This document shows positions 20,001 through 58,255 of a DNA stretch of 64,000 bases, piece by piece. The stretch's first letter is position 1; the number at the start of each line of letters is the position of its first letter. The stretch is from Amphiscolops sp. MND2022 (Eukaryota). Made by a program: the position numbers and the translations under genes. The stretch covers positions 42,718,001-42,782,000 of the forward strand of contig OZ076409.1 of the NCBI GenBank assembly GCA_964187785.1, read 5' to 3'. The notes under the pieces are model-generated. The model ran no database searches and had not been told where the DNA came from. It saw nothing but the letters and a program-made list of their open reading frames with translations.

Positions 20001-23000
20001 CCTTCGCCAGCGGCCTCGAACTGGTTCCATAATTCTATTGGGAACGGTGCCTTTTTCGTGACTGTGGGGCCCTCTATATAAGTGTTTTTAAAATAGAGTG
20101 CAAGTTCGTCCACTTTTTCGCTGATGCTGTCATCAAACGTCTCCTTATCAATGACTTCAGCAATTTCTTCTACTACCAATTCAAAAGATGCTTTTACATG
20201 ACAGGGCGGGACATGGGCAAGCGCGGGAAGCATTCTAAGTGCCAAATTGAAATCCGGGCAGTTTTCGTAAAAAACTTTCAGACCAATTTCGTTTATTTTA
20301 CGGTTAAACGATTGTGTCAAGTGAAAGTAGCAACATGAAATGTTCGCATCGGGAAATTTTTTGCTGAATGCGTTCAATGCTGCTTTTTCAAAATCCGCAA
20401 GGATGCGATCTGGTTTGGCGTTCGTTTCTTCGCAGAGCAATTCAAGCATTCGGGAATATGTTTTTTCTGTTTTGTTTGGTAGTAGCAAACAGACACAAGG
20501 TGGTGCAAAACCTTTTAACTCAATGTGGATTGTGTATATTTGGTAAAAATTGTCCGGGGATAATTTGAAAGTTCCATCAATCAGCCATGTTTTCGAAAAA
20601 TTAAGCAAATTTTTCATTGTTGTATCGCCAAACATTAAAATTCGTTCACTGTCGTCTTTTCCGCTGTCTTTCAGAAGAAAGGTTTTGAATTCTCCAGGAA
20701 TGCCAAAATGGCGATCAATCGGGGTTGGGGCGTCAATTCTATTTTCTCTTTGTCGCTTGCGGCAAGCTGTTCTGATTAAATTTTCTTTTTTCGGCAAGGA
20801 AAGCTGGACTGCATAATCGTCGGAGATAACCGATATTTCACTTGCGATGGCCACCGTTGGTGTCAATGACTCGGACTTCTGTTTAATTTGGTTAACAACT
20901 TCTTTCGCTTTACACTCGGAAGGGTCACTTTCATGAGTGTGACTGTCTTTCAAACTAATGACCACGTTCTGGTTTGTCTTCAAAACGGCAGGGCATTTAA
21001 TTGAATAGTATTTCGTGCATCTCCAATGAATGCAACTTGAAGTGACTTGTTTTGATTGTAACAGTAACCGTTGTGTACTGCAATATTGCCCCCTCTATTT
21101 GATTTTATGATTTGAATTAACATTTTGAGTTTTAAGATTCCAAATTATTGAGCTTGTTGTGTGGACTGGCTACAATACAGCTGACTTCGCTATTTATACT
21201 ACTAAAACGTTGCAAGTAATTATCACATTTCATAGTGTGAAAGATTATTGTTAGTTGCTGGACTCTTATAATAGCTTTACTAATTACCATATAAGCTTTC
21301 ATAATTAGCACGGCTTGAGAGCAATTAGGCGGAAATGTGATAGGTTGAAATTGCCGTAGGTTGAAATTGCAAAAGGTTGAAAGTGTGAACGGTTGAAATT
21401 GCAAGCGGTTGAAATTGTGAACGGTTGAATTGGCAGCGGTTGAAATTGCATAGGTTGAAATTGCATAGGACGAAATGTCCTGACACCATCATTCTAATTC
21501 AAAAATAGAAACTGTTTTGGTTTCAAATGCTTGCCTGAGTGAGACATGACCCAATGCGTGTAGTTTTCGATCATGGCCAGAACAGATATCATGGCACTCT
21601 CGTTCTTCACCAGGGCGGGACTGTTGGCTGTCACCCCCTCCAAGAACTTGATACCCTTGTCCACAATTCGGTTGGCCATTTCAGAGAGTTGATCGAGGGT
21701 GGGATTTGTTAAATTAGTGGTCAAACTGTAACGGTGAAACAATTAAGGTACATGGTTGTGTTCAATGTTCAGAAAGAAAACAAAATTCACAAAAATCGTT
21801 GTTACAGAACGAATTCAACGAAGAATTCAGGCTCTTAGATTTCCTGTTTGAAATATCAAGATTCAAATTCAAGTTGCAGTGGGATTTCTTTTCTAAAGGA
21901 ATGATAGTACCAGTTTGATGCACTGTTTGCTGTAAGATGCACTATTAGATCTTTTGAATAATAGCCACCCTCCCGAGGCATCCCTACGGAAAAAAGCCCC
22001 TCCTTCATATAACCGTTTGAAAATCAGCCCCCCTACCGGACTTGAAGGTGGGTTGGCCGTTGTTGATATAATCTAATTGTATTCGGAAAATTTCTACCAA
22101 AAAACTTTCCAATATTCGTTAATGGTAAGAATGATGCTAACGTTATCGTTTGTAGCATGCCTAAAATAGACAAATATTGCTGTGCCTTGATTCTTTCAAT
22201 ATTAGGCTCCAGTAGGTTGACCATTCTGTCGATGGAGTTGGAAAGAACTTTGAAGTGAATTTGTGACTTGAACAACACTATTTCTTCCAGGGCAGCCAAT
22301 TCACGAAGCAGCTCCAATTCGTTCCTCGTCATCTTCACTGTTACTTCATTGACAGCCAAGGTCGAAGTTGTTGGTGTTTCGGTTGTGGTCTCTTTTTTCT
22401 CATTTGGGTTGCTCGTAGTGTCATTTACTAGTTCGGGTTGACCTTCCACTTGAATAGAGGAGGCTGTTGCGAAAGTACTGCGAGTCGTTCCGTCTCTATA
22501 GAAAGTCGTGGTGGCGACATTTTCTCGGAAAAGTGCACACGTGCAAACAAACATGCCAATCGGTAGTTTCACTGTGGCACATCGTTCAGCAATGTACGTT
22601 TCAGTGTCGTATTTAAGCTCTGTGTCTCTGAAACCCACGACAACTGAGTTATCTTGTGATAACATACAAAGAAATCTCAAGTGATTGCTCCCGATGTTGA
22701 CACCGCAACTCCTACAGCAGAACGAGACTTGGCTGTCTGAGCGAGAAGTTTCTTCGATGTAGACTGACTCCCATATTTTGTTGTTATCCAATCGGTCGCT
22801 GATAAGCAATGACGTCAAATCGGTGACGTCATTGTACGCATCCACTTGACATTCGGTAGTCGTTTCGGGCCAAGGTATTATGAAGTTTATGACAAAAGTA
22901 CCAGCACTGTGTTCAGTTACTATGGCATCTATATCACCATTTCGGGACCCTGAGCACGTGACTTTGACATTTACTTCCTGTCCGTATATGACAACTTGAC

Positions 23001-26000
23001 CTTCCAGCTTTCCAGGAGAACAAGTAACGTTATACGTGAAGGGGTTGTCACCTATGGGTGCAGAAGGATGAGCCTCTAAATCAAAGTAGCGGGTATGCGT
23101 CCGTAATTGGGTTTCAGCATGTGACCCTTCAATGCCGCTGTAACATTTGAGGAAGTAAAGTCCGGAATGAAGAAATGGATTCAAGTTTTGGAATCTAAGG
23201 TAATAACATCTTCGAGTTGAATTACATTGCGGGTACTCGTCAGGGATCACTTCCCAAGTCACTCCCCGTTCGCCATTCACGAGTGGTGTCTCATCAGCAG
23301 GGTATAACCTGCCCCAGGTGCAGTTTTTGAAAGGGTTGCCGACCACACAAGATTTGAGCGAAACATCTTCTCCAAAACAAGGTTGGGTCAAGGAGCTATC
23401 TGTAGGCCGGCACCAATAGTCCAGAGGTTCAATGAAGTCATCAACCTTCATGTCTAGGAAAGTGGATTCAAATCCAAGTTGAAACCAATTAGATTCTGTA
23501 GTTATACTCTCATTCGCAATTTGCCTGCATCGGAATTGTTTAACGTCACTTTCTTCCGGAAACGGAACTTCGTATGTCACCCGTTCAGAACCTGTCAGAG
23601 ATTCGAATGTCTTGTTCTCATAAGAGCCTCGGGGAAGAGCTTCGCATTGTAGCGTAAAGAGGGGTGACCCATGAATGAGAGCACCTACAGTCTGTTTCAA
23701 CCCAATATTTACATCTAAAGGTTTGTATAAACATTTCCCGGGGTCCGCAAAAATGTCCCATACTTTTCCTCGTTGGTATCTGCAGAGTCTCGCTATCTCA
23801 ACATCTGCATTTTCAACCTGGGAAAAACCAACCTCTTGATCGAATTTCGCGAGCGTTAGAAGTCTGCGGTCCGAAGCCCTCTCCATGGAGAAGAATACTT
23901 CTGATGGATCAGCTTCTATGTCAGGCGAGTTTGGATTCATGCCAAAGTTACAGGTAAGAGCAGTCCAGAATTTGATCAAATTTATGTTGCCAAGCTCAAC
24001 TCTTTCGCTTTCAAGGTTCCTCAGAATTCGAGAAGTGATAGCATCTTCGGTATCTCGTACAAAAGTTCCGCCATCTCTGGCGCAGACATCCCTCGGCTCT
24101 TTATTGCCAAATGGGGGAAGCAAGCGGTAAAAGTAAAGAAAGCCATTGTCCATAAAAGCATCGTAAGCTAAGTATAAACCTCTTGGGTTTATGTCTTTCT
24201 GTGGTCTTGGCGTTACAATGCCAACATCGAAGACATTGTTGACATAAAACATTAGATATTGCTGTGTAGTCGTTTCTTTATCAAAGGACTCACAGGTAGC
24301 GGGTACAATCGGATTGTTAATTACATCGATGTCACAGTTTCCATCAAACGATCTTCCGAAATAGTAACAATGATCCACCGAAATGGGTGTCACCGCGAGA
24401 TAGTACCATCCTATATTCCATGGCTGGGTGCTGAGAATCCCAAAAGTCACTGTCGCTTTTCTGTTTTGCTCATCGAAGCTTAGACTTCTCAGTGCTCTTT
24501 TATCATACAGCAAAGATCGCTCTACTGTGTTTGTGTATTCGCAAGGATTAAGTTTATTGTACCCTGGTATGTCCATGAAATATTCAGCTTTCCAGAACTT
24601 CAGGGAGATGTTCAAAACGGACTCAGATGCAAACAAAGCTGAGTCTGTAAACAGGTGGTGATTGATATCACATGTTACTTCGACATCTTTTCCGTGCAGT
24701 ATGTCAGTGTTGCACCGTTCGGTGCATTCTATCTTGAAAGGATGAATGAACTCTGATTCCACTTGTTTCAGCTCTCCTCCCGCCTCCATGGAAAATCTGT
24801 AAAGCCCGGCTGACTTTGGGGACAAACCGAGAAACTCTAAAGTTCCAGTTGCCCTGACTTTGAGGTGATTGCCTGTACAGGTGTAAAAGTACTCAGTGCT
24901 CACTGCGGTTGACTCCGCTGTCCAGCCCCCATTGGGAGGTTGAAACGCATAGGTGAAGAAGTCCATCAAGTAACCAACAGATTGGACTTTAATTTTGTAA
25001 AGGGTGTCGTAATCCGTTGGTTCTAAGTAAACCGGTGTTTGGTCAGCACTGATGAACTTCAGCTCGTCGTGCGACCTTTGAAGCTCGAAAGTTCCTTTTA
25101 TGGCAACAAAAACTGTGTCGTTCTTCCTACGGCCAGCGACACATTCGATCTTAGCCAACACATCATTCGTGTCGACTTCGACCTCGTAAATAGCGACTTC
25201 GTCTTTTTTCATTTCGAACGTCCGGTCTTTATTTCTTATGACCAAGTCTCTGTTATCCCAAGCTTGACACACGACTTCGCGACTCTCGCGGGCACCTATG
25301 ATGACTGGTTGTACCCTGTACTTAACAATCGCCACTTTGTCACCCGATGCGTCCTTCACAGCACAACTCTCCGGCTCAACGGTGATTTTATTGATCTCCG
25401 CGTCATAAAAATAGCAAAATATGCCAGCAATGTTGTCATTATAGTCTCTACACTCTAGTACATCCATGAGACCAGTTTCCTTGTCTATATAAGTACACAT
25501 CTCTTTAACTGAATCTCGGAGATAGACGTACACTTTATCCGACACGTCATCGCCAATTTTTTTGCCCCACTTGCCGTAGATCATAGACTGGAGAAAAAAG
25601 TTGGTGTCAACTGCCTGAAATTGGGTGGCAAAGTATTCGCTGAGGACGTCGGCTCCTCCCTTTTGACTAGAGCAGGCGTCTTTGACCTTCAGAAGACGTT
25701 CTGGGTCTTCTTGGTCTAAGCCGTGGGGAAAATCGACCATCGTTACAAAGAAGTGACCCTCAAAAATGTTCACGTGGAAGTAGGATTCTCTTGGGTCAAA
25801 AGGCAGCTGTAAACATTTAAAACAATTTTTTAAATTCAAAATCAAATTCAATACCAAAGTTTATCTTTTCAAATAACCGATGTTACAGTACCATTTTTGA
25901 GAAAAACTATAATCATTCGATGATCATATTATGAACCATTATTTTCCGCCCATATTTTATATGGGAAAGGAAAATGTTTAATTCAAACGGGTTTTTTACA

Positions 26001-29000
26001 AAATTTGCCAAGAATTATTGTTTACGTAATATGAAGAAGTACATTCACAGAATTCAACTGACATAAATTTAGTTCCATGCGATATGTATTTGTAAAGATT
26101 TTTGGACTTAAAACGATTTTGTTGCTCAAATAATTTGGGGCGGAAAATATCCCGCTGGTCCGCGGGCGTCTTAATTAATATTCAATTATTTTTGTTGCAA
26201 ATTTGCTCAAACCTTCTGTTATCAACGCTCAAGTTTTTTTACAAAATCATTGAAAGTCTTCCCGAAATACTTTGAAACTTCTGACGTTTCACGTAGATTG
26301 GTTTTGTTGTCTTGATTTTGATTATTTTAACACACAAAGTAAAAAATTTTCGGAATTTGAGAGGTTGCGGACCTTCATTTCCTGAGAAATGCTATAACTG
26401 GGAATCTGGAGATTGTAGGTGTCTTTCTGAATAAACTGGAAAGCTTCGATCATGAAGAGCACCAAGCATCTCTTGTATTCGTCAAGGTACTCCACTCGAT
26501 AGTGAATGACCCCTTCCATCTTTTTGGGTACCCCGTTCTCCATAATTACGTCAGAACCTTGAAAAAACAACCATTGTTCAAAGAAACATAAACTATTGAC
26601 ATCAAATTGAAACAAGAAGCCCGCTGAGCAGCGAGATATTTTTCCGCCCCCAATCTGTTCTACAACTATATAAATTTGAGGCTCAAGAATAGCCAATGCA
26701 CTATAAAACCCAAAAAAGGTCGAACAAAAGAAAGCTTTGATTCCTCGTAACCCAATTTTAAGGAACCCCCTAATTTATTATTTCTGCAATAGCTGGCCAC
26801 TTTTCAATTTTTCGGCACTATGCGACTCACCGAGAGAAGAAAAAAATTTTAATATATTTCTGAAAACAGTTTTCGAAAAACATTTTCGCAATTTTTAGTT
26901 TATGAGGTTTTCGGTAAAGAAAATAACTTTCCCGAGTCTTGAGGGTGACTTCTTTGCTACTTTTGATCATACTTTGGAACTGACAAGGATTCTTATTGAT
27001 TGTAGAACTTACCTCCTTTCAGTTTTTACGACTCTGTGCGTCTTTCCGAAACTTTCATTTGGTCAAAGAGAAACCCATGCTTTCATAGCAGATTTAGGCT
27101 TGAGAAAAGTGGTTTTGCGAGCTGAGACTCGTTTCGCCATCATAAATTAAAAAAATGGATATTTTCATGATTCCTGTGGGGCAAAAAGTGGTTTCCTCAG
27201 GCGTACTTCTTGAGGTAATTTTTGGCACTGAGAAAATGGTAAAACCTTTTGCAAGTTTAGGAAAGTTGAGCGATCCTAGTTTGTTATATTATTGCACATA
27301 GTTTCACCAGAAACGTCAAAAATTGGAAATCGTTTTGACAACTTTGTGGTCAATTTGAGGAATTTTTCTAAAACGAGTCTACAGATGTCTCTTCAAAATT
27401 AAGCACAAAAGTTTTTCGACACCTTTGGAGTCATTCTGAAGTGCTTTTGAAGCAATACGCTGCAACGTTTCTTCAAAAAAAGTATGCATGGCTCGTCTTT
27501 TTGTTGTTGAGTTGATTGTTGGGACTTGGAACGAAAACTTTCGGAAATTGTACAGTAAATGCATCGAAAACGAAAAATTTCCCGACATTTCAGGGTCAAT
27601 TTGAGGCATTTTTCTTTTACGAATTGAACTTATCTCGTAACGAAAGCTCACCGAAACAACAAATTTGCCCATGCCTTAAACGTTTCATTACTCTAGTCCA
27701 CGAAGTCTATCGATAATTTGACAAATTGAACGAAAACAGTTAGAATCGGAAAAATTTTGAAATTTTGTTTTTTGGTGTCGATTCCGGACTCTTTTCGTTA
27801 AAAAAAAGTGTATACATCCCTTTTCTAAACATACACTGGACAACTTTTTCTTTCCTTGTTCACTTTTTCAACGTTCCAATTGACGAAGTCTGTCAAAAAT
27901 TTGAAAAAATGCACAAAATTTTTGGAAATTGGAAAATTTTTGGTGTTTTGTCATTTTCGGTGTCAATTTGAGACATTTTCATTCACAACATTGCGTATAT
28001 CTTTTCCTTAAAAACTACTGGGTGTGCCATTTTTTAATTATTGACCCTTTATTACATTCAAAAGCTTTAACAAAAACGCATAAAATCTCTGAAAAAAGAA
28101 AAACTTTATGTTTTTTGGTTATTTCGAGACATTTTCACTTAGAAAACTGAACTAAACTCTTCGGATAAGCCTACTGGACACCACATTCTTTCCTTTCTGA
28201 CCCTTTTCAACGTTCCAATCTACAAAGTACGTCAAAAAATGGGAAAATAATTGCATAAAATCTTTCAAATTTAAATTTTTTGTGTTTTTGTCTTTTTCGG
28301 TGTCAATTTGAGACAATTTCATTTTAAAAAATGCAAAACATTTCTCGAAAACGACTACTGGACAACCAACCGGTTCCTTGCTGAATCTTCAAAACATTCC
28401 AATATTTGATATCTGTCACAAATTTGACAAAAAATGCGTAAAAACTTTTAAAAATGAAAACTTTTGGAGTTTTTGTCTTTTTCGGAGTCAATTTGAGACA
28501 TTGTCACTTAAAAAACTGCAGTAAACTTTAAGGAAAAGCCTCCTGGACACCACATTCTTTCCTTGTTGACCCTTTTCAACGTTCTATCTACAAAGGCCGA
28601 CAAAAAATTAGAAAAAAATGCATAAAATCTTTCAAGTTGGAAATTTTCAAGATTTTTGTCAATTTCGGTGTAAATTTGAGACATTTTCGAAAATGCAACA
28701 AACTCTTCAAAAACGACTACTGGACAACCAAACTATTCCTTCTTGACCCTTGGGAGCATTCCAATCCACGAAGTCTGTCAGAAATTTGACAAAAAGGCGT
28801 AAAAACGGTAAAAATCGGGAAACTTTTGCACACTTTCTCATTTTTGGGGTAATTTTTGGGTCATCGTGGGGTCAACTAAAAATGTCCAGAAATCACCACA
28901 GAAACAAATCGCACGAAGCTAGATTCATGTGAGTTGAATTCTATAGGTAACACCCTCAAAGGTAAATTTGGTGCTGGTGAAACCCGTTTCTTCCAAATAT

Positions 29001-32944: not shown

Positions 32945-33464
32945 AAAATCCCACATTAACAACCAAAAAATTTAGTGGTCATCAACATTTGGTGCATCGA
33001 TTTATATTAAATGAAAGTTGTGTAGCCATATTCACCACCATAACCTTTAATCGTAAAAATAGTCGAAGCTAAATAGTGAAAAGATTAGTAATATGATAAC
33101 AGGTGCGAAAGTGCTGAAGATTAGTGACAACCAAAGTATCCAGTCGTCTAATGCACCTTGAAGTGATATTTGCTGGCTTAACCAGTATTACAAAATATGT
33201 AGACTCACTCAATTAAGCTAACGCATGACAGAAGATCAGAAAGGTGCTACTACGAAATAGAATACAACCAGTTGACCATTCGCTACCGTGATATTCAGAA
33301 GTTACTGTCTAAACTTGTCATAAGATTCTAGCCTAGCATTCAACTTAGTAAAATTACATTTCTGCATTCGAACCTTGGTTCAGTCCAAACTAAAACAAAT
33401 CTCATCTCCAAAAATGGTAAATACTAGATCACAAGTTCATAGAGAGAATCGAACCGAACAGTCA
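32945..33464 (+). repeat. Partial Gypsy-A LTR with gag start MVNTRSQ (ATG at 33414), running into the gap
   Basis: Homologous to 50615-50774 joined to 59210-59580, and carries a single uninterrupted GGTGC at 33102-06. Confidence 0.8.
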
Positions 33465-34330
33465 NNNNNNNNNNNNNNNNNNNNNNNNNNNNNNNNNNNN
33501 NNNNNNNNNNNNNNNNNNNNNNNNNNNNNNNNNNNNNNNNNNNNNNNNNNNNNNNNNNNNNNNNNNNNNNNNNNNNNNNNNNNNNNNNNNNNNNNNNNNN
33601 NNNNNNNNNNNNNNNNNNNNNNNNNNNNNNNNNNNNNNNNNNNNNNNNNNNNNNNNNNNNNNNNNNNNNNNNNNNNNNNNNNNNNNNNNNNNNNNNNNNN
33701 NNNNNNNNNNNNNNNNNTCAAAATTTCAGACAATATTAGGCACTCTGACCCCTTTTTGTGATTATACAGAAACGCTTTGAATTTTTTGCCCTTCTGGAGT
33801 CTCCCAAAAGATAGAAAGTGGAATGTTGAGCACGCCTTAGTTTGGTGGAAACGTCAAGAATTTTATGCCGGTGGGCTGGAGTCCTATTATTGCAGGAATT
33901 AGAAAATCTAGAAATTTTATTTTGTTCATGTCAAAATGAGAATATAGATGCTTTTTGATACTAACATGAGTGACAATTACGGGTTCAGAGGCGTTTAATT
34001 AGAATTCAACTTTTGATACCTTTCAAGTTTTTTTAAACCTTCTTATGATTATTTTCTTCCAGTCTCACCGTATTTCTAACTGATAAAATGTTTTCAACGA
34101 CTACTGTAAAGGTCCATTGATGTGCATATAGAGACGTTTCATACTTTCAAGGAAGACTATCAGATAACCTTCAACCCACTTTGGTAAATAGAGACGTTCT
34201 GGTTAAAACTCAAGTTACATATCAAGGTAACATATCATGAACTCAAAGCATTCAAACAACAAGTACTGGCTAAGTTGCCAAAAGAAACAAAGTAACAGGG
34301 ATAAATACAATGTCACAAACTCAAATCAAA

Positions 34331-36472
34331 TCAGTTTTTCGTGTTTTTCATTACATTTGAAAGCTTTTTAGTAGCCTTATCAAGTACCTTCTCACGATCA
34401 GCATTACTGAGCTTCATCAGCTTGCACAGGTCTCTGAGTTGGCCCCGACCTGTGTAGAACTGAGCAGCAACAACTTTGGTAAACAGTTCCTCGAGAAATG
34501 GTTGCAGGGGATCTGCAGGTCCTTTGAATTTCATCAGTTTTTCACATATAGCTTCCCATTTTGTCGCATCGTTTTCTCTAGTTTTCAATGGTCTTTCTGT
34601 TTCCCATTTGACCTTTACCCCTGGATCGGGCTTATAATCTTCATCGTCTTGGTCGCTAGGGATTGGTGTTGGAGCATCATCTTCACACATGTCATCCTCG
34701 TCAATCACCAATGAGTTGTTGTTGGCGTCTTCATTGTCAGGTGTCAGAGCGCCTCCGTCGACGTTTTCTTCCTGTGTATCACCAACGTTTCCCGTGTCCA
34801 TAGTTTCTTCTTCACTTTCGTGCTGTTCAGGATTGTCCTCTTGCTCAACTGGTGGTGGGGGCGGGGGATCGTCTTCGGCCACGTAGCAGCTTTCGGGGTC
34901 ATCAATTATCTTCAATTGCTCATCTAAGAAGCTTTCAATTTCATTATCGGTCGCCGGTTTCAGGTAGTATTTTCGACGTGTAGCCTCACAATGGCCAGTG
35001 TTCATCTGGTATAGCAGGGCATTTTGACCTGTGACAAACTGAGACTTCTCGAAGAAGGTATCCCATGCTTTTCGAACATTGTCGGGGTTATACAGCTTGT
35101 CGTCAATTCGAAAGTATTTGTATATGGCCTCCTTGAAATATTTGCCTTGGCAGGTGAACTTCTTGTTGGTGTTGGACGGAAAAGCGAGCTTAGGCGTCAG
35201 ACCATTGTTTTCTTCCTGGAAGTATTGATGAAGGTCATCTACCCATTTTCTATTCTCTTTTGTTATCCGTATGAAATTGGGAAACTTCGCCCCAGTTTTG
35301 TGCTCGAATGAAGTCATAACCTTCTTCTCTTGCATGACTTTATAGTCCTCAAAGGTCAAGTTCAGCAATGCACCGATTCTGCAGTTCGATTCTGAATGGA
35401 TTACAAACACCAAAAGGCATAAATATTCGAGGTAAGTGAACGAGCTGTAGACGTTCTGACCCAGCATTTCTTTAACCATTTGACGAAGATGGCTAACTTG
35501 GTACAAATTTGGCACCGAATCGAACCTGGCTTGCATACGCCGATTAAACTCATTCGAAGCCTCCTTTGCAGTCTTTTTCAGCAGGTTTCTGACCTCTCCT
35601 TTGAACAAAGCCATGTTGAATCTCAATTCTTTTTGTTTGTAGGAGTTGCAAAACTCGAGAAAACGATTGAATTCAAACATTAATTTCCGCATTGTTTGGA
35701 ACGTGTAGTTTTTTTCTGACTTGATTCGATAAAATGTTGACTTGACAGCCTCGGGTTTCCTCAAAAAGGACGTTCCACTAAGAATTTGAGCCAAAAAAGT
35801 CTTCTGGAAGCGGGTCATGTTTTCATCACCGGCCTCGTTCCGGTTCTCATCATACTCGTCGAGCAGTTTATGGTGGTTGAAAGTTTTTCCCCGTATACCA
35901 GGAATGTCAAAGCGGAAGTGTGAGGGGAATTCGTTCATAGATTTGGGGTTTACTTTGATAATTTCATGCTTTCTGCAAATTTTTTTGTGTTTCTTCTTTC
36001 CAGTGAACCTTATGAAGCAGCCGTTGCATTGGTACACTGTAGACACACAAATCCTTGTAGCATAAAAAGATAGCAAGAATTTTCGTTGTTGGGTTGTGAG
36101 ATTATGGCTCTTGGAGAAATGCTGTCTCAGATTCGCCACTTTTGTAAGGCAAAGTACACACTGTTTTACCCGTGGTTGTTTGGGCCGTTTGCCTTGCAAT
36201 TGGTTTCGCTGCAATTGTCTGCCTCGGCGCGTCGTTGTTTGTGGCTCATTTGAATTACTTGGTTCCCTTGGTTCAGAAACTATCTCATTGGGCGACTGAG
36301 CTTGCGTAGGCATATCAGAATCATCCAAAATTCGGCTTGAACATGCGTTGACTGACTCCATGATATCCATACAAGTTCTGTTCACAAGAGCGTTTGTACT
36401 CGGAGAATACGCCAATCCGGCAATTTCTGTGAGGTTGGAAATACAATCGAAGGACGTATCAGCTTGTGACAT
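34331..36472 (-). CDS. Intact zinc-finger tyrosine recombinase (YR1), 713 aa from the likely ATG
   Basis: C2H2 CVLC..H..H and CNGC..H..C fingers, a core-binding-like region, then R376 (NCRIG), K403 (HKTG), R478 (DNVRK), H505 (TGH) and Y514 (ORF-track numbering). Acidic linker and helical C-terminus; ACC-ATG context. Confidence 0.85.
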   Translation of the reverse strand: MSQADTSFDCISNLTEIAGLAYSPSTNALVNRTCMDIMESVNACSSRILDDSDMPTQAQSPNEIVSEPREPSNSNEPQTTTRRGRQLQRNQLQGKRPKQPRVKQCVLCLTKVANLRQHFSKSHNLTTQQRKFLLSFYATRICVSTVYQCNGCFIRFTGKKKHKKICRKHEIIKVNPKSMNEFPSHFRFDIPGIRGKTFNHHKLLDEYDENRNEAGDENMTRFQKTFLAQILSGTSFLRKPEAVKSTFYRIKSEKNYTFQTMRKLMFEFNRFLEFCNSYKQKELRFNMALFKGEVRNLLKKTAKEASNEFNRRMQARFDSVPNLYQVSHLRQMVKEMLGQNVYSSFTYLEYLCLLVFVIHSESNCRIGALLNLTFEDYKVMQEKKVMTSFEHKTGAKFPNFIRITKENRKWVDDLHQYFQEENNGLTPKLAFPSNTNKKFTCQGKYFKEAIYKYFRIDDKLYNPDNVRKAWDTFFEKSQFVTGQNALLYQMNTGHCEATRRKYYLKPATDNEIESFLDEQLKIIDDPESCYVAEDDPPPPPPVEQEDNPEQHESEEETMDTGNVGDTQEENVDGGALTPDNEDANNNSLVIDEDDMCEDDAPTPIPSDQDDEDYKPDPGVKVKWETERPLKTRENDATKWEAICEKLMKFKGPADPLQPFLEELFTKVVAAQFYTGRGQLRDLCKLMKLSNADREKVLDKATKKLSNVMKNTKN

Positions 36473-36659
36473 GGTGTCTGAAAATACAAGATTCTGAAAT
36501 TTCACATGAAATTAGATAAAAGGTGCAAATAGTTGACAGCGCGTCTCTGCCGTGTTTACTTTCAAATCACATTCACTTTGACAACGATTATATGACCGCT
36601 TATTATGCGAGAGTGCGTACAAATTACCTGCAGCGATGAGAAAAGTAAGCTTGAGCGAT

Positions 36660-36716
36660 TCTGATTGGTTCTTACGCTAATAAAATAAGAATTTAAGTCA
36701 CGTGATATTACGTCAG
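36660..36716 (-). promoter_or_regulatory. Possible YR1 promoter elements (CCAAT, CACGTG E-box, TGACGT)
   Basis: Motifs clustered about 190-240 bp upstream of the ATG; motif match only. Confidence 0.3.
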
Positions 36717-37001
36717 CAAGCATATTCTTATCTTCCCTACTGTTGAAACGTCTCTATATTCACTCAAAACAGTTGAAGCGAGTCTATATTCTAAAAAAGA
36801 TTTTTTTAAACCGTGAATGAATCGAACTGAAAACTATGCCGAAAAGTTTTATATTGCTTCGCGATTCAATAACGAATATCGAAAAAATTGTACCATTTGA
36901 AAAAAAAAAAATTTCTAAAATACTTTCCAACCCCCGACTAAAATTGCCAGAGAGACTGTCTGACCCCCCTTTTGGAGTTTCCTGGGTGCTGGAGCGTATC
37001 T

Positions 37002-37023
37002 GATCATCATGATGATGATGATA

Positions 37024-37093
<70 letters not shown>
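37002..37093. repeat. (GAT)n microsatellite, about 28 units
   Basis: Read directly from the sequence. Confidence 0.98.
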
Positions 37094-37736
37094 CCATTAT
37101 AGACGCTGTGTATCGGCCCTCGATCGTTAGAGATTGTATGTACAGGATCCCCATTTTCAGGTGCTTTTCCCTGGATTAGTTCCAAAAAATACCAAAGGAT
37201 TATCGTCTCTTATGTTCGCCTATTCTAGTCAATTTAATTCTTGACCCACAGACGGAATCTGACGTTGCTACGACGAGTTTTAGGAGAAATTTGAGAGCCG
37301 TTTAAAAAACGGAGTAATCAGCTTGAAAATGTAAAAAATGGAGACTCGGCGTACAAAATTTGTGAAAATGTAGTACTCTGTGTACAGCAAAATGAAAATC
37401 GGAGACTTCAAGTACAGTGCAAAAGTTGGTTGTATCAATAGTCCAACCATGGATTTAAAGTTAGCCTAGGGAACGTATTCGCCACGTACAATGTCAGTTC
37501 CGAGATACTTTTCATTTAGAAACGATTAAGGTTTTGAGTAAAAAAAATCGAGACGCTGTGTACACGCTTAGAAAATCAGAGATACTGTGTTTAGCTCAAA
37601 AAAAAAGAACAAAATGGCCTAGTTTTTTAAATTATATCAAGAAATACGAATACTTGAACATTGAAATGAATACAAAACAGTTCCGTATGAATGAATCAAA
37701 GTTGGAAACAAGTTTTGGTTGGGCGGAACAAATGTT

Positions 37737-39424
37737 TTAAAGGTCCAAATGCTTGCAAATGTTGTGGTATTTGGAGTACACTTTGTTGAGCACTGCTTCC
37801 TGGTCCTGCAAATTCATTTTCATTGGCAGCATGAGGTTCCGCATCTCTGTTTTGGCCAGTTTACCATCGACTTTGCTCAGGAGATCAATAAGACGAATCA
37901 TGCTCGCATGCAGTGGATCTCGTGGTCCCTTGAATGTTCGCATTCTTCTGTGCAACTCGTCGAGTTTGGATTCAGTCGACATTGTTGCTTTAGCATACCT
38001 TCCAGGAGCTTTTATAATTCCTGTCCTGGTCTTAACTGAGCTGAAAGAAAATGTACTACAAGTTGACAACTCATAATCTGAGTCTGTCTGGATTGGCATT
38101 AACACTTCCCTGAGGGGCTGTATCCAAATTTCCAAGAGTAACCTCGGACGCCGATGTATACAAAGGGTCTGTTGTATAGGCATCATCGTCTTCAATTGTC
38201 TTCGAACACGAAGGCTCGGGAACTTCTAGCTCGTGCGTGCTGAGGCCTTGGTGCATCAGTGGAGCCTGGTTATACCGGGATATCCATATGATCGTCTTCG
38301 ATTTGATTTTCGGCACTGTACACGGCGTCTCTGATTATGTCTCTCTGATGGGCAAGTAAGTCCTTTATTGCGTCTTCCTGCATCGGTGCGACGTAATGAG
38401 CTGCTGCTGTTTCATCGGTGTGTCCAGTGTTCGGAGACGCCATGTACAATGTGTTTTTCCACTTCTTTTGCCAGTTTTGCCACCTTTTTGAGGGTTGGGA
38501 CCTGTTCGAACCGCTTTTCTTTCCTAAGTTCGATCTCTTGATTCCGACTTTTCTTTGTTCGCTTCTGATAATCGTTAATTTCGTTCAGAATCGAAGTAAA
38601 TTGTATCCGTATTATTCAGGATCTGTGCCGTTGAAGCCATGTTATGAAGTCTTTTAGGGCAACAAGGAGCTTACTCATTGAATTTTGTGTATAGCCATTC
38701 GTTTCTTTGTACTCCTTCAGCACTGTTGCCACTCTAGCAGTGTCACGAAAGTGGTCACTCTTCGAGAACACGGCTTCAATGAAATTTCTTTTGAACTGAC
38801 TGATTTCTTGACCTTGGGCTTCTCGAATTGAATTGCAATATTCCTCCAACAATTCAGCAGATTTAGGCCCTAAATCATTTCGTTCTGACAACTCCTGTAT
38901 CTGGGGTGAAAATTCTTCATCTGATTTCTTATTTCTGACCTTCAGGATGATGTGTTGAGGGAAATCATTATTGTGTCTCCTGGGATTCGTCATCCTCAAG
39001 GGCAATTAACACACTGTGAAACTGGACCGCGGACGTTTTTAGTACAATAGAACAACATCAAGAACTTCCGGTGCTCTGATAGAAGGTTTCTTTGATCTTT
39101 GTCAAGGTGCTGTCCTATTTTTGCGACTTTTTTGCGGCAAATTGTACAGTCACGTACTGCTTCCTTCGATGTTTTTTTGTGAATTTTTCGCCGTTTGGAA
39201 GTCAAATTGGCCTGCCCATGGGTTGGTTCTTCTTCTAGAGGAACTTCAACCTGTGTAGAAGTTGCCGCCGGAAGATCAGCGGCGGGGGAGAGTTGTAGAC
39301 CGAGATCTGAGATGGTATTCAGGTCAAAAGTTGACATTTCGGCTAGTTGTCGGTCGATCATTTCCGAGGTCTCATTCCTCAAAATACCAATAACAGTTGG
39401 TTGTAATGCCTCTTCTTCGCTCAT
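37737..39424 (-). pseudogene. Second YR paralog (YR2), frameshifted, catalytic core deleted
   Basis: Collinear homology to YR1: CTICRKKVAKIGQHL/RKFLMLFY, RFEQVPTL vs RFDSVPNL, NTGHTDETAAAHY vs NTGHCEATRRKYY, FKGPRDPL vs FKGPADPL. About 150 aa carrying R, K and R are absent. Confidence 0.85.
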
Positions 39425-39966
39425 GGTAATGTATTGGAACAATTATAACCAGAAAACAATTTTTCGTTCAAATTTTTAGACCGACTGATCAGTAGGAAGC
39501 TGTAAGAGAAAATGACACCTGTCAATAATTTATTAAGTGTACACAGCGTCTCTGAAATAGAAAAAGACTCAAAATTTTCCCACCTGCTAATATTATTTGA
39601 CTCAAAGTAACTATACACGTTTGCACGTGCTAGCACTTCCTTTGAGGGGAAAATTAGAAGTAGACGCTGAAGAAAAGTTGCGGCTTCAGTCAAAAGTGTT
39701 GTTGTACAATGAGTCTCCGATTAGTCCAAAATTATACAAGTAGTCCAGGACTTTCAAAATGTCATTTTTTGAGCTTTGATGGGAACCGCCTGTTTTTTCG
39801 CTTGTGGAATACTGTTGAAATTTTGAATTTATTGGCGGGATCAAAAGTAGGGAGTTCGAAAAAAAACATAATAAAGTTTCCGTGAGATTTCTGGTACATA
39901 GGGTTTTGGGTGTTTTGGAGACTCAGTGTATACTCCGGGAAAACTTTAGGACTACGATGGATCTCC

Positions 39967-39973
39967 GATGATC

Positions 39974-40011
<38 letters not shown>

Positions 40012-40014
40012 AAT
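39967..40014. repeat. (GAT)n microsatellite, about 15 units
   Basis: Read directly from the sequence. Confidence 0.98.
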
Positions 40015-40053
40015 ATTAGTGTGATTTTCCACTTTTGCGGTATATGTATCGTA

Positions 40054-43000
40054 ATGGTGACAGGAGTCTCGACGAACTCAATCCCAACTCCAAACTTGCA
40101 GCAACCACACAGGACCCCAACTCCTGCAATCCACCAGAAAAGAGGACATTCCCAATCCGTAAACGAACTACAAATGGACGACGACATGACGGAAATCCAG
40201 AATTTGCGCACCACAATGACTGATGGAGTGATGCAACCAAAAATATTGAAAACACAAGTCCCTCTCTTCCGCGGAAACAGAGAGAAATACAATGAGTTTT
40301 ATCACCTGCTCAAAAATCATGTCCGCCCACACATGCACAAACTGACGGAAGAGCAGAAACTCAACTACTTTCAAAGCCTGCTCAGGGATGACGCCATGGA
40401 ATTCTGGCAAACAATGAAAATAACCACCTAAACGACGCTAAGAGACGTCTTGCAAGCTTTCAACAAGGAGTACGCGGAGAAAGACCTCAAAGAGGTGTCG
40501 AAATACAAATTCGACCAAACGAGGTACAACCCCACTACAGCTTCGTTTGCCGACTTCAACACAAAATACAAGAAGCTTGCAAAACAGGCGTATGGAGAAA
40601 AAGCCAACGATATTGCTGAAACATTTTTGTTTGCCAACCTACCAATCCAGATACAAAAGGAATTGGCCATGGCAGGCAAGAACGACGCAACAATCAAGAC
40701 GTTCGTGCAAGGACGCTGCCAGTAGGCGTAGATACTACCGGAACATCTGGAATGCAACCCTTAAACCAGATACAAAACTACCCTGAAAGACAACAAGGGA
40801 ACCAACAAGCCCCTACTAACAGTAAATAACGCAAGCGAAACACAAACAAAGAAGTCAAGAGGAAAATTGAAGCCAACTGCAGGTATTGCACCACTGTCGG
40901 TCACAAGAGGATCAAATGGCGAAAACGTCTCAGAGACGCGGCTAATAGAATAAATACAAAAACCTACCACATTCCACAATCAGACAACAACAATGCCCAA
41001 CCACAACAAAACAACAAACCACGATACAATGCGAAATGTGTTTGCCAGAACTGCGGGAAAGTTGTACACTATGCCCGAGATTGCAGAAATAGAGTAAAAG
41101 GTGCTTCCGCCTACCGGAACGCACCATACAAGCAGTCAACATCCGAAAACCGAGAGTTCCGACGGGATTTTAGACAGTCATAAAAATGAAACCAGACGAT
41201 GTCTCAGGTAACCCAGGAAGCAACCCAACCGACACAAACTGAAGACCACAACGACTGTTACAACGAGGAGTACAATGACGAATTCCACTCCAACTCGAAA
41301 AACCTGTAACGCCACGTCATCCTCCACTGAACCAGACTACAAATGCTCGCAACAAACTACATTCTAACAACCACTACAACTCGACGACCAGGACATCAGA
41401 ATGTCGGCAGCATTCTAAAAAACAGACTAAACCCTCTTGAAAATACTACGTACAGAAAGTTTCTCACAATAACTACCACATCCTTCCTCTAATTGGCGAT
41501 GACTACCTCGAAACCAAAACAAGAGACGAAAACATACCCTGACTAAGAGGAAAATTCAACTAACGCAAAACCGGAAAACCACACGAAAAACCACGCGAAG
41601 TAACCAATGACCATCAGACCATTGAGCGCTACCCTACAACTCGATAGAAGAAACAAGATGATCTAAGTCCCTCTACCTAGTTCAAGGAATATGAGAACTA
41701 CGGATTGCTCGACACAGGAGCATTCCAGAGCGCAATGTCTGAAAACGAACTGAGACGGATACTCCAAACAAAACCAGCCGCCCAAATCGAAGAATTTCCA
41801 ACCCCGGACTTCAAAGTCTAAGTTGCCAATGGGAGTATCGTCCCAGTAAGGAAACAGTTCTTTCTTCGTTTTTTTTATTGGGGGAATAGTTTTCGAAGAG
41901 ACATTCATGATTCTACCTAAAATGTTGAATATCCTGATAGGAATGTCCTTTTTCAGAAAATTCTTTGTGACTCTGACCTCGCAAACAACATAGTAAGATT
42001 CCCAGAGATTACCCTCCAACTCAATTGGCCAAATGGGAAATTGAAATTACAAATGTTGGATCACAGAAGACAATCATCTCAACCAGACAAAAAGTATTTG
42101 TTCCTGTGATTGCAGAAAAGGACATCGGCACAGTGACAGGCACAGTAGAAGCGTTCCCGGCCGTTGAACGTAAGACAGAATTACTAGAGTCTCAACAGAT
42201 GTCCAGATTACCAACCACCTGGACCACACCATAACAATTCCCCAAAACTCGACAGTTGCAGTATTCAAAATCCTGACTCCAAATCAAGCCTAAAACGTAC
42301 AGTCAATGACAATCGAACAACTGACCATGATCTCCAACTTTCCAGACGAAGGAGACAGTGTGATCAATCAGTTGTACCAGGACCCTGGTGCATCCAGAGA
42401 CAAACGTGGTACCCGGCACCCGAGACATGCGACGATCCTGACATACTCAACAGGAACGAGCGTCGCTTAAACGACGAAATCATCCCACTCCGAGAACCTG
42501 AATAACATGATCCCACATGTGACGACGAGCAACGACAGACGTTCCTCAAGAAATTCCGCTGTGACGATTCAATCCTCGATGAGCAGGAGCAACAGAAGAT
42601 TGAAGCACTGCTGGTCAAATACCACATGATTTTTGCACGCCATCGATTAGACATCGGTATCAATAACGATTTCAGAATCAAGTTAACACCTAAACATGGT
42701 GATTCTGTGTACGCGCAAAGTCTACCAAAGCCAACCAACCTGAAAGATGACGTACTGGAAGAACTGGCCCTCATGCAGTGATACGGGATCACGGCGACGC
42801 TTCCGTACGGTTCCGTATACTTCCCTGATATTTGCACAGTGGAAGCCACATGGCAAACTTCGGATACTAATGGACTTAAGTGGCATCAACTATCTCCTCA
42901 AGAACGACTATAATCAACACAATCACCCAGTCACAACAAAAGCAGATGCTGCTCAACAAATGGCTGGCAAGAAGTATTTCTGCAAACATGATTGCTCACA

Positions 43001-48959: not shown

Positions 48960-51725
48960 ACTTCAATATTATCACGCAAACAAGAGGTAAGACGCCCATG
49001 GCACAACAAGAGGTACGACAAACCAACGCCATGTTAATCAAACCAACCAGGCAGAATCCAAATCAATCATTTCTAATCACACTAAATACCGTCCAAAAAA
49101 GAAAAAAACAAAAGCCACTTCAACACTGCAAAACGCGGTCGTGAAAGTCGATCCTCGAAAACATGAACATCGAAACTAGGTTGGGCTCTGACAGCCGACG
49201 ACACAGTAGGACGGTGCGTTCCGAAATATAGATTCAAATCGTCCCATCATTCGACTAACTCTGTAATTAACTGCGCTAGCTCCACAGTAGTTTGTCTCAT
49301 CCGCCCGCACGTAGTAGAACAAACAGCACACCATATTGCCAAAATATCGAACAACCAATGTACACCTACCAAACCCACTCCCCCCTCGCCAACATCCTCG
49401 CACTTCAAAAAACCGCAGAAATAGAGCATAAAGAACTCACTCAAGCGAAAAGTTAATATTACAACAATCGAAACAACTCTAACAAAGTATACTTACACGC
49501 CGCAGTTCAGGCAAACTGTCAAAAGGCCGGTCATCAATGACCCCGGTCATTCGAAACTTCAGGAATTCTAGCACACTGTATAGGTCCACACCACTCATTT
49601 GTATAAGAAAGCGGGTTCTGATGACGTTTTGCATCCACCACAAGTCAAAGACCTACATGACCACTGGCACAGTCGGTACAGCCACGCTCGCAATAGCCCG
49701 GCCCTCAGCAGGGTAATTGTCTACGCACACCACGCCCTAATTGGAAATACAGTCCACGCAAGACAACGCAGTTGCGACGATACGGGACAAGCTCGACTGT
49801 TCTCCAGGCCGTACAGCGCCGACAAGCACTGCTTTCAACTCTTTTCCGTCCACAAAATTACTGTCAAATCTCCACTGAAACAACTCCTGAGTGAGTCTCG
49901 CACCAACACGACACCCCCTGTTGGGTTAACTCACTGAGCTGCTCAACCACGTACGCGTACAATCCGTATAACACCAGACTCTGAAACACGAAACATACGG
50001 TGAACTTACAATGATATCGGAACAAATTACCATACGACAGACACAAACCAGGCTCACAATTACTGTACGCAAGCAATGTAACCCCCTTTTATCTCAATTT
50101 GGCAATAGGAACAAAATACTTTCTAGCAATTACTTACTTGGCATTTTGGGTGAGTCAAAGAACGCTCCACGAGATCCAGTTCACTGCGCATGCAAACGGT
50201 GCTCAGCACCTTTCTAATGCCCCACAGTTTGTTGAGACCGCGACCGGCAAAACTGATGTCAACTCTGCCCATGAGACAACGGGCATACCCGTCGATACCG
50301 CGCTTGTGACACCGAAATCCCACAAACAAACCGACCACGCTGGATACCAAGTACGAAGGCTTCAGTGTATTGATCTTCAGTTTTCGCACTAAAACATAAC
50401 ACATAAAACATTAACCGTGTTGCTCCGCAAAGAAAAAATGGTTCTATCTTATTTAGCCCTTAGTGTTTTTGTATCCTGAACTCCTAGTTTTGGAAACGTG
50501 AATTCCTAAGAGTAAGTCACGTTCAAATTACACCTAAAACCCCTCATGAGATTTTATGAGATTCTTACCAGGTTTGCTGTCAGACGTCGATGGCAAAGCG
50601 ATAAGCCCTCCACAAAATGCCACAGAACAACCAAACGATTCAGTGGTCATCAACAATTGGTGCATCGATTAATATTATATGAAATTTGTTTAGCTCTCAT
50701 CACCACCATAACTTTTAACCGTAAAATTAGTCGGATCTAAAAGATGGAAAGGTTAGTATTATGATAACAGGTGCTGCTGGCGCCAGTCAATTGCGAGATC
50801 AAAAACTCAAATTGGAACGTGACTGATGAAACTTAGCACTCAAAACTCTGTGAAAAATGATCAAGATTTTGGTTGGAAAATTGCAACTTCTAGCTAAATT
50901 AGCCGTGTGTAAAAAACCATCATCCCCTTTTTTGAGAAGCACTTGTCCAATGACCCTGACACTTAGCACGCAAATACTAGAGGTGCTAACTCAACTTTTC
51001 ACTCAAACCACCCTACCTCGTATCTCCCCTGGGTTCCGAGCAGTTATCTCTGTTGAAATTTATTATATTTACATTGTGTAAACATACTTTCTAGCCCACC
51101 TAACCAACATGCCAAAACCACCACATAGTTTGTTTACTTATCCAATAACTTCATTTTACGCTTTGAATGTCATTAATTTATACAACATATTCCAACTGAT
51201 ATTTGCCAAATTTACTGTAGAATTGTAAACCACATTTATACCAGTATTAGATAGAGATTTTCTCCACTGAATAGATATAGTCAAGTTGGGTCTTAGGACC
51301 AAGCGACTAATTGATAAACTTCTTAATCTTCACAACTTTTCGCTAGAGTTAGAGCGACTAAGTAGCTACTCTCATAGTTGGAGAGCCGGAGCGCGTGAAG
51401 ATACAGTGAGGGAAGTGTGTGCAGGATCACATCGGATCCAACAAGTGCAAAGAGGGATCGCAAGAGATTCCTACGGGTCACATCGGACCCACCAGCTAAA
51501 AGATACAGTCCTTTAAACACGAAAAACCAGTAATTGCTTAGTGACGGTCCACAGCACTAAGCAACGGATCAGGGCGGCGTAAAGCTTGTCAAGCCTCAGC
51601 GCAGGGCAAGCAGCCGTTACATTTGGTCCGCCGACCCGGACGAGAAGACGAAGACGACTCGTTGGTGGACAACTGAGAAGATTGCCCAAGAAGAACAAGT
51701 GTCTGGATCTTGGAATCTCTGATTT

Positions 51726-51930
51726 TGTGTCTCTGAGAGATTGGGCTGCTCTGTCTCTGGGAGATTGGACTACTGTGTCTCTGGGCGATTGGGCTAATGT
51801 GTCTCTGGGAGATTGGGCTACTGTGTCTCTGGGAGATTGGGCTATTGTGTTTCTGGGAGTTTGGGCTACTGTGTTTCTGGGAGATTGGGCTACTGTGTTT
51901 CTGGGAGATTGGGCTATTGTGACTTTGGGA
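51726..51930. repeat. 24-bp minisatellite, about 8.5 copies, in the BEL leader
   Basis: TGTGTCTCTGGGAGATTGGGCTAC units. Confidence 0.9.
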
Positions 51931-52059
51931 ACTGAGAGAGAACAGATGGCTTAACCAAAGCGGTTTGAAATCAACAAAGTTGAAAACTTTCTGAAGAACT
52001 CTGCAGACAACGCGCAAACGCGGAGTTATAGGAATGCAGCTGTCGAGCACGGAAAGTCG

Positions 52060-58000: not shown

Positions 58001-58255
58001 GGAATGAGAGATTTAAATGGAATAAAGAAGAAGTTAGACAACTTGAAGTCAATGATTTGGTTTGAATAGTAGATGAGAATGTGAAAAGAGCACATTACAA
58101 GATGGATAGAGTGTTAGAAGTCTATCATGGAAGCAATGGGCGAGTGAGATCAGCGCTGGTGAAAACTGAAGAAGGAAAACTGAAAAGACCAGTAGTGAAA
58201 CTGGCACCCATGTTCCACGAAAGTGTTTTTCGGGAGAAAAACAGGGCCGGTAATG
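52060..58255 (+). pseudogene. BEL/Pao gag-pol, fragmented
   Basis: Coiled-coil gag, FSGDPLEW region, Cys-His knuckles (CALKDGKHPIWKC, CFKCLSDAHQMRNC), protease CDSGAS, RT FYMDD, integrase SDNGTNFVGA, C-terminal GRVRSALVKT. Confidence 0.93.

Follow-up and report, generated by a model that had tools for sequence, protein, structure and literature searches.

Eukaryotic DNA transposons that encode only a tyrosine recombinase (YR) are rare and poorly understood: their ends are hard to define, and target rules are known for very few families. Cryptons are eukaryotic DNA transposons with a YR as their sole product and fall into groups F, S, A and I (Kojima and Jurka 2011, PMC3212892; see also Goodwin 2003). 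Models of these elements invoke a circle and its recombination at short direct repeats of the termini (PMC3212892, PMC9977147), and Crypton activity with clean excision has been observed in Chlamydomonas (PMC9977147). CryptonA recombinases match DUF3504 at 8e-12 or better (PMC3212892). Endogenous nimaviruses have recombinases in which a C2H2 finger and a SAM-like domain accompany a recombinase domain that keeps five of seven key residues, and they insert into (TAACC)n or 28S ribosomal DNA (rDNA); related non-viral recombinase-like proteins of decapods have also been mentioned (Kawato et al. 2023, PMC10871703). Here we analyze a 64,000-nucleotide stretch of the Amphiscolops sp. MND2022 genome (assembly GCA_964187785.1, contig OZ076409.1, positions 42,718,001 to 42,782,000 of the forward strand), which as a whole is referred to as the window. 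It contains two tandem zinc-finger recombinase genes, YR1 and YR2, lying next to (GAT)n tracts; together these probably represent a head-to-tail array of two units of a YR-only, Crypton-like DNA transposon that recombines within (ATC)n microsatellites.

The two-unit array and its recombinase

The array consists of the following features (positions are those of the window; aa, amino acids):

33718..37010, minus strand: YR1-type unit (U1), comprising the 3′ trailer, the gene and a 538-bp 5′ leader; its 3′ end is truncated by an N gap
34331..36472, minus strand: intact YR1 gene, 713 aa plus stop
37011..37091, no strand: pure (GAT)27 run, reading (ATC)n on the gene strand, at the junction of the YR2-type and YR1-type units
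37092..39975, minus strand: defective YR2-type unit (U2), with 94–97% nucleotide identity to units of a second locus, L001
37737..39424, minus strand: broken YR2 gene, a divergent paralogue of YR1, with ATG at 39424 and stop at 37737
39976..40011, no strand: pure (GAT)12 run at the upstream end of the array, where similarity to other copies ends

Each unit contains a single long open reading frame (ORF), with no reverse transcriptase (RT) and no other Pfam domain, and an Rfam scan of the window gave no match. The YR1 frame is open throughout 34331–36505, with the first ATG at 36472, and encodes all five conserved catalytic residues, so that the gene looks functional. Over the 3283 bp that could be compared, U1 of the window has 98–99% nucleotide identity to units at three further loci (L001, L002 and L003, all from ENA ERZ25074608), where complete U1 units are 3316 bp long; the window copy is cut short by the gap at 33467–33717. 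Judged by its sequence, YR2 is dead: comparison with an intact L001 relative of 709 aa, to which it is 95.5% identical at the nucleotide level, shows four indels that shift the frame (including a ~0.45-kb deletion) and two stop codons created by substitution. YR1 shares 98% identity with the database protein P0001, and the best protein relative of YR2 is P0032.

The original prediction, made from the letters of the window alone, described two collinear but highly divergent YR genes of two families in the same orientation, with a (GAT)n tract 530–545 bp upstream of each ATG. This description was borne out. Both genes lie on the minus strand and belong to different lineages (P0001 type for YR1, P0032 type for YR2); YR1 and the intact YR2-type gene (L001:125–2251) are collinear and ~26% identical; and the ATG of YR1 lies 529 bp from its tract, that of YR2 543 bp. 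The tract lengths given there were (GAT)28 and (GAT)15; the tandem-repeat finder (TRF) calls (GAT)31 at 37001–37093 for the inner tract and (GAT)15 at 39967–40011 for the outer one, and the pure runs comprise 27 and 12 repeats. These two tracts are the only repeats of period ≤6 in the 64 kb (TRF score ≥60), and both lie exactly at unit ends. Because there are no other such repeats and the two positions are equivalent, chance placement of the tracts can be discounted.

A Pfam scan of YR1 and of the YR2 pieces gave no integrase match, the curated threshold of Phage_integrase (PF00589) not being reached, and sequence and profile searches of the PDB returned only noise. Relatives were collected by a word-based search (10 sequences) and by a HMMER scan of 1.84 billion representatives (203 clusters). 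Among 40 diverse relatives, weak matches were found to Phage_integrase in 3 (sub-threshold, best E = 4.3e-5), to Phage_int_SAM_1 in 7 and to the ROS_MUCR zinc finger in 4. An AlphaFold model built on a 150-sequence alignment has a predicted local distance difference test score (pLDDT) above 90 over residues 100–530; a 10-sequence alignment had given pLDDT values of 33–58 in the catalytic part. The following parts can be distinguished in YR1:

C105/C108/H118/H123: zinc finger 1 (C2H2), invariant wherever relatives cover the region
C149/C152/H162/C166: zinc finger 2, with the spacing of finger 1
residues ~200–530: SAM-like core-binding and catalytic domains
residues 544–629: acidic disordered linker
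residues 632–710: C-terminal helical domain (pLDDT ~95)

The top Foldseek matches of the model in the PDB were all tyrosine recombinases, namely XerA (E = 5.6e-5) followed by the Tn1549 integrase, Cre, lambda integrase and XerH, in alignments of ~350 columns that cover both the SAM-like and the catalytic domain. Matches in the viral structure library (BFVD) were phage integrases and VLF-1 of nudiviruses and baculoviruses. Conservation was scored in the alignment of the 40 relatives, with denominators that vary by coverage: R365 is kept in 37/37, K392 in 38/38 (within the conserved stretch H391-K392-T393-G394), R467 in 39/40, H494 in 37/39 and Y503 in 36/40. The tyrosine nucleophile thus occupies a position nine residues after His-III. 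By its predicted fold and its near-invariant R, K, R, H and Y, YR1 can confidently be considered a tyrosine recombinase. The architecture proposed originally (finger, YR and acidic tail) was recovered as zinc fingers, YR fold and acidic linker, with the C-terminal helical domain in addition.

Boundaries, loci and termini of related units

The window array was split at its tracts into the reference units U1 and U2. Each of the three further loci resolves into head-to-tail units with (ATC)n (gene strand) between them:

L001: intact U2 (709-aa gene), deletion derivative, U1, a second copy of the derivative, and the start of another U2
L002: U1, a U2 fragment fused to part of a third lineage, a second U1 and finally a U2-type deletion derivative
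L003: U1-U1

Lineages are interleaved in the arrays, and their order varies by locus. The U1 copies share 98–99% DNA identity among loci, and the flanks of the arrays are unrelated between loci except for dispersed repeats. The protein cluster of YR1 (≥90% identity) has 54 members on different contigs of one assembly; 8 of the 15 members listed are of the full length of 713 aa, and the genes are intronless. The element is therefore multicopy and mobile, and not a host gene pair.

The internally deleted U2-type unit occurs in three copies (L001 3036–5423, L001 8910–11299 and L002 10907–13281). The copies within L001 are 95.5% alike, and the 3′ part of the derivative is only ~83% identical to U2 of the window. 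It lies directly downstream of U1 at two of the three places and directly upstream at the third, the U1-derivative pair recurring in L001 and L002. Such recurrence suggests either a non-autonomous derivative or a two-unit block moving together.

Five (ATC)n lineages, with 98 to 26% protein identity and from three samples, are represented by the window, by loci L001 to L003 and by three more distant contigs:

L004, sample ERZ25067548: array of 3.3-kb units, 51% protein identity to YR1
L005, sample ERZ25067548: array of 3.3-kb units, 36% protein identity to YR1
L012, 3535-bp contig of the JGI (Joint Genome Institute) metagenome Ga0126343: one unit with (ATC)35 at each contig end, 67% identity

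The latter metagenome is derived from the coral Cyphastrea sp. (bioRxiv 10.1101/391565). Every ~3.3-kb unit in the five lineages is flanked by (ATC)n, and the sense strand always reads ATC, never GAT. The presence of GAT at both ends of other copies had been named beforehand as a check; it was found in all units of L001–L003 and in the three divergent lineages from two other samples. Unit lengths are 3311–3326 bp in four lineages. Tracts range from 5 to 570 repeats overall, those between units of L004 and L005 from 21 to 570 copies. The contigs on which L004 (21 kb) and L005 (11.9 kb) reside are of low coverage, have names ending in _c (taken as a flag for circularity) and consist only of recombinase units and (ATC)n; they may be assembly artefacts of tandem arrays or multimeric circles.

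The outer ends of the arrays also bear tracts, which adjoin unrelated DNA. Outer tracts have 12–21 repeats on the upstream side. On the downstream side, the L002 tract has 22 repeats and that of L003 is (ATC)5 grading into AAC repeats, as would be expected of an old host microsatellite. The DNA just upstream of the outer tract of L003 (7380–7398) reads ...AAGCGTCTCAC and is similar to unit 3′ ends (...AGCGTCTCC...). This similarity may be due to chance or to the survival of part of an older unit. In relatives, contig breaks coincide exactly with the tracts. We conclude that the (GAT/ATC)n boundary is a property of the family, and the data suggest that the microsatellite serves as the integration site of the element.

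More distant relatives are associated with another trinucleotide. P0061-type contigs, which come from marine and Tara metagenomes, terminate ~700 bp past the stop codon in (GTA)n, the repeat (TAG)n read in a different phase. The assembly that contains the window also has an element of the P0053 type (L017), which is preceded by (TAG)40 and followed ~8.7 kb downstream by (TAG)4; a perfect inverted repeat of 10 bp lies just internal to the two tracts:

L017 6092–14915: P0053-type element, with a SET-domain ORF at 7390–7983 followed by a 1065-aa recombinase

A SET domain is also present at the N-terminus of P0045 (P0045/P0184, contig L016), so that a distant lineage pairs or fuses SET with the recombinase.

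No long terminal or inverted repeats were found around the array with an 11-bp seed. The ends were compared with the tracts as anchor points: the 22 nt that follow the upstream tract were aligned with the reverse-complemented 22 nt that precede the downstream one. The two arms match at 16/22 positions in the L004 lineage, 15/22 in U1, 15/22 in L012 and 13/22 in U2, two of the matches stemming from the anchoring itself. Random 22-mers from the same units reached such values in at most 42 of 20,000 trials, and the value of U1 in 3 of 20,000. Thus, although no terminal inverted repeats (TIRs) had been noticed originally, short imperfect ones do adjoin the tracts and are seen once the comparison is anchored there. 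In L004, the 5′ end is ATGACTATCGGAGACG and the reverse complement of the 3′ end is ATGACTATCGGAGGCG. U1 and L012 show a paired difference at one arm position, with A in both U1 arms and G in both L012 arms. The terminal features of U1 in the window are:

36989..37010, minus strand: 5′ terminal inverted-repeat arm, adjoining the tract, 15/22 matches to the U1 3′ end of complete copies
36961..36967, minus strand: GGGGTCA subterminal motif, ~45 bp inside the 5′ end
33746..33752, minus strand: GGGGTCA motif of the 3′ trailer, oriented like the 5′ copy

Inverted arms adjoin the tract in four of the five lineages. A unit junction, like any circle junction, is accordingly composed of two inverted arms around a microsatellite, that is, it has the layout of a recombinase core site in which the repeat replaces the spacer. 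U1 and L012 have the 5′ GGGGTCA at an equal offset, and L005 has it at +56; the 3′ motif lies 23–54 bp from the 3′ end in U1, L004, L005 and L012. L004, L005 and L012 have a further direct copy ~265 bp inside the 3′ end, which reads GGGTCA in two of these lineages. These motifs may be accessory binding sites. The (GTA)n-associated P0061 lineage has a comparable arrangement: in L014 (1–90 and 3330–3380), GTCAGGAGACCCA occurs twice near the 5′ end and twice near the 3′ end, one 3′ copy being imperfect and all being in direct orientation, and it can be likened to the GGGGTCA motifs of the (ATC)n lineages.

Proposed mechanism, alternative explanations and surroundings

An integrated element reads, in order, (ATC)n, 5′ inverted arm, leader of ~530 bp, recombinase gene, trailer of ~640 bp, 3′ inverted arm and (ATC)n. 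The recombinase would bind both inverted arms and perhaps, through its zinc fingers, the subterminal GGGGTCA motifs. Recombination of the flanking tracts would release a circle with the junction 3′ arm-(ATC)n-5′ arm, which could re-integrate by strand exchange within any genomic (ATC)n tract. The ATC repeat would provide the identical crossover sequence required by tyrosine recombinases, and its asymmetry would set the orientation of the element. Integration into the tracts of resident copies would result in mixed-lineage head-to-tail arrays, and blocks of several units, as well as deletion derivatives, could be moved by exchange between tracts that are not adjacent. Such a model accounts for the tracts observed on both sides of every unit and at both array ends, for the constant ATC orientation, for the mixed arrays, and for possible movement of blocks and derivatives. 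Insertion into a pre-existing microsatellite, with the tract being split, is the best reading of the sequences.

Several observations speak against this model. Excision, the circle and crossover within the tract are all inferred, and neither an empty-site allele nor a circular form nor a polymorphic insertion was present among the loci examined. The arms are 33 to >1700 bp apart across the tract, compared with a spacer of 6–8 bp in classical sites, and the inverted repeat is weak in the L005 lineage, where it comprises only a short TACGC core after a one-base shift. The canonical His-II position of the recombinase is N, T or D and Glu/Asp-I is mostly P, so that five of seven key residues are kept. 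The distant contigs L013 and L016 carry no microsatellite within the contig, and the P0179-type gene has (TAA)n 1.8 kb upstream, an ambiguous case, the six contigs that show it being one locus from several samples. Finally, a 5.9-kb block is repeated in L001 (95.5% identity), and some neighbouring tracts of L004 and L005 are identical in length; both resemble segmental duplication or an assembly effect rather than separate insertions.

The last two observations are what would be expected if the units were a coding macrosatellite, spread and amplified by unequal crossing-over or segmental duplication between microsatellites, a process for which the recombinase has ceased to be responsible or never was. 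Some arrays certainly owe part of their structure to segmental duplication, but the whole pattern is beyond its reach: arrays are present at no fewer than four loci with unrelated flanks, lineages only 26% identical are interleaved in differing order, many copies that are 98–99% identical retain open frames and catalytic residues, and the terminal arms are conserved between lineages. We consider the macrosatellite improbable. A more serious alternative, although still an unlikely one, is that the (ATC)n tract is borne by the element itself as a slippage-prone core between the arms. Integration would then occur at short or unrelated sites, perhaps of one or two ATC units, and the outer tracts would arise by exchange and expansion. 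This would fit with the fact that the tract is always present and touches the arms, with the lack of an empty site among the loci examined, with the use of short sites by Cryptons (4–6 bp, PMC3212892; CAYCG, PMC9977147) and with lengths of 5–570 repeats, which make it clear that expansion occurs. Yet both outer ends of the arrays bear tracts of 12–22 repeats beside unrelated DNA, and one of these grades into AAC repeats that are absent from the internal junctions. On balance, we rank the tract as target, which is probable, above the tract as part of the element.

It is very improbable that the units are modules or fragments of something larger, such as a DIRS/Ngaro element, a Polinton-like virus or a nimavirus-like endogenous virus. 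RT ORFs lie less than 3 kb from the array, endogenous nimaviruses are served by tyrosine recombinases of similar architecture (PMC10871703), and the P0053 lineage is longer (~8.7 kb), with its added SET-domain ORF. However, at every locus the unit is complete between tracts, with 3.3 kb and a single ORF, the one-unit contig has tracts at both ends, and no relative was found in 2.9 million viral contigs. The RT belongs to an opposite-strand BEL/Pao element beyond the array end, in agreement with the original statement that no RT belongs to the units. We give almost no credence to domestication as a host gene pair. The intact YR1 ORF would be in keeping with it, but copy number and unrelated flanks contradict it: the genes are multicopy, intronless, spread over many loci and bounded by repeats, and they are accompanied by dead copies and deletion derivatives. 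A single-copy, intron-containing host locus, which had been put forward as the outcome that would overturn the transposon interpretation, is at odds with the 54-member cluster.

More broadly, and as a tentative possibility, the family may be part of a superfamily of eukaryotic YR DNA transposons that reside in marine invertebrates, including corals, and home to microsatellites, the repeat acting as the crossover region between inverted arms. The motif would have been switched between lineages, with (ATC)n in five, (TAG)n in two and possibly (TAA)n, and the repeat-specific recombinases of nimaviruses would be captured members. If so, these elements build mixed arrays and could help to create, expand and spread trinucleotide microsatellites. 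The transposons described here have sharp ends (tract, inverted arm, gene, inverted arm, tract), and this layout holds down to 26% protein identity. Their apparent target is a class of sequences, the trinucleotide microsatellite, and not a unique site, which offers a testable picture of a harmless niche and of array build-up. They may also link free-standing transposons with the repeat-specific integrases of large endogenous crustacean viruses. Microsatellite loci may share flanks by virtue of being element junctions, which matters for marker design and assembly.

The array is surrounded by other mobile elements. To the right of 40014, the plus strand carries a BEL/Pao-type retrotransposon (DUF1759 gag, Peptidase_A17 and RVT_1 domains), a kind of element that indirectly points to an animal host. 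This remnant (39910–40431, plus strand, and on to ~48000) begins right at the array end, and the mechanical ORF at 39910–40431 (plus strand) translates (GAT)15 as poly-Asp before the gag domain. A second retrotransposon, at 50775–59204, has long terminal repeats of ~0.9 kb (50775–51621 and 58254–59204, 91–93% identical) and RVT_1/Peptidase_A17 ORFs. It sits in a repeat of which an uninterrupted copy is located at 32945–33464, just left of the N gap, so that the window holds an occupied/empty pair for this element. A MULE transposase ORF (19931–20983, minus strand; PF10551, E = 4e-14) is flanked by ~148-bp inverted repeats made up of 16-bp tandem units (19026–19173 versus 21488–21341, 86% identical), and 19026–21488 looks like a compact MULE element. 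A 1274-aa ORF at 22033–25857 (minus strand) has no Pfam match at E ≤0.01 and coincides with a local rise in GC content to 0.43–0.44. A ~185-bp satellite is present at 27835–28855 and 11116–11779, with degenerate copies elsewhere in the window.

Comparison with known systems

No description of a recombinase-only transposon bounded by trinucleotide microsatellites was found in the full-text literature; Repbase entries were outside this search, and an existing entry is possible.

DIRS/Ngaro elements are likewise eukaryotic, recombinase-bearing and often arranged in arrays. They differ in features that the present units do not have: RT/RNase H, split or inverted long terminal repeats, and an internal complementary region. 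With respect to the niche, the units resemble microsatellite-specific non-LTR (long terminal repeat) retrotransposons, among which R1-clade families are reported to occupy (AC)n, (TC)n and similar repeats. Simple repeats are a safe target in both cases, but the enzymology is different, an endonuclease and RT there and a tyrosine recombinase here.

The best structural matches of the protein are prokaryotic YR systems that pass through a circular intermediate (Tn1549/Tn916 integrases, lambda integrase, Cre/loxP and Xer/dif). Like these, the units have inverted binding arms that flank a crossover region, and the direct GGGGTCA motifs could correspond to ‘arm-type’ sites. Sequence identity is only 9–15%, the N-terminal domain here consists of zinc fingers, and in place of a 6–8-bp spacer there is a microsatellite measuring tens to hundreds of bp.

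With Cryptons, which are also known from cnidarians, the units share a tyrosine recombinase as the sole enzyme, without RT or DDE transposase. They also share direct repeats at both termini, read as recombination substrates, as well as non-autonomous deletion derivatives and a presumed circular intermediate. There are several differences. None of the 40 family members matches DUF3504, even at E = 1, no search recovered a Crypton sequence, and the histidine of the R-H-R-Y tetrad is not conserved. The terminal direct repeats are (ATC)n of 5–570 units rather than 4–6 bp. Animal Cryptons have neither TIRs nor a C-terminal domain, whereas the present units have imperfect TIRs (13–16/22 positions), N-terminal zinc fingers and a C-terminal helical domain. 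The element is therefore Crypton-like by the operational definition of a YR-only DNA transposon and does not fit the named animal groups (CryptonA/CryptonI). The mechanism proposed above extends the Crypton model by replacing the 4–6-bp site with a microsatellite.

Nimaviral recombinases have the same described architecture and residue count and show lineage-specific insertion into simple repeats, a likeness of design that is drawn from their description only. The nimaviral genomes of 200–600 kb sit on the pentanucleotide (TAACC)n or on rDNA, in contrast to a 3.3-kb single-gene unit on trinucleotide repeats. No relative of the family was recovered from the viral contigs mentioned above, and no viral genes adjoin the units. 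By analogy of design, the simple-repeat-specific recombinases of endogenous nimaviruses nevertheless appear to be the closest counterpart of the recombinase units described here.

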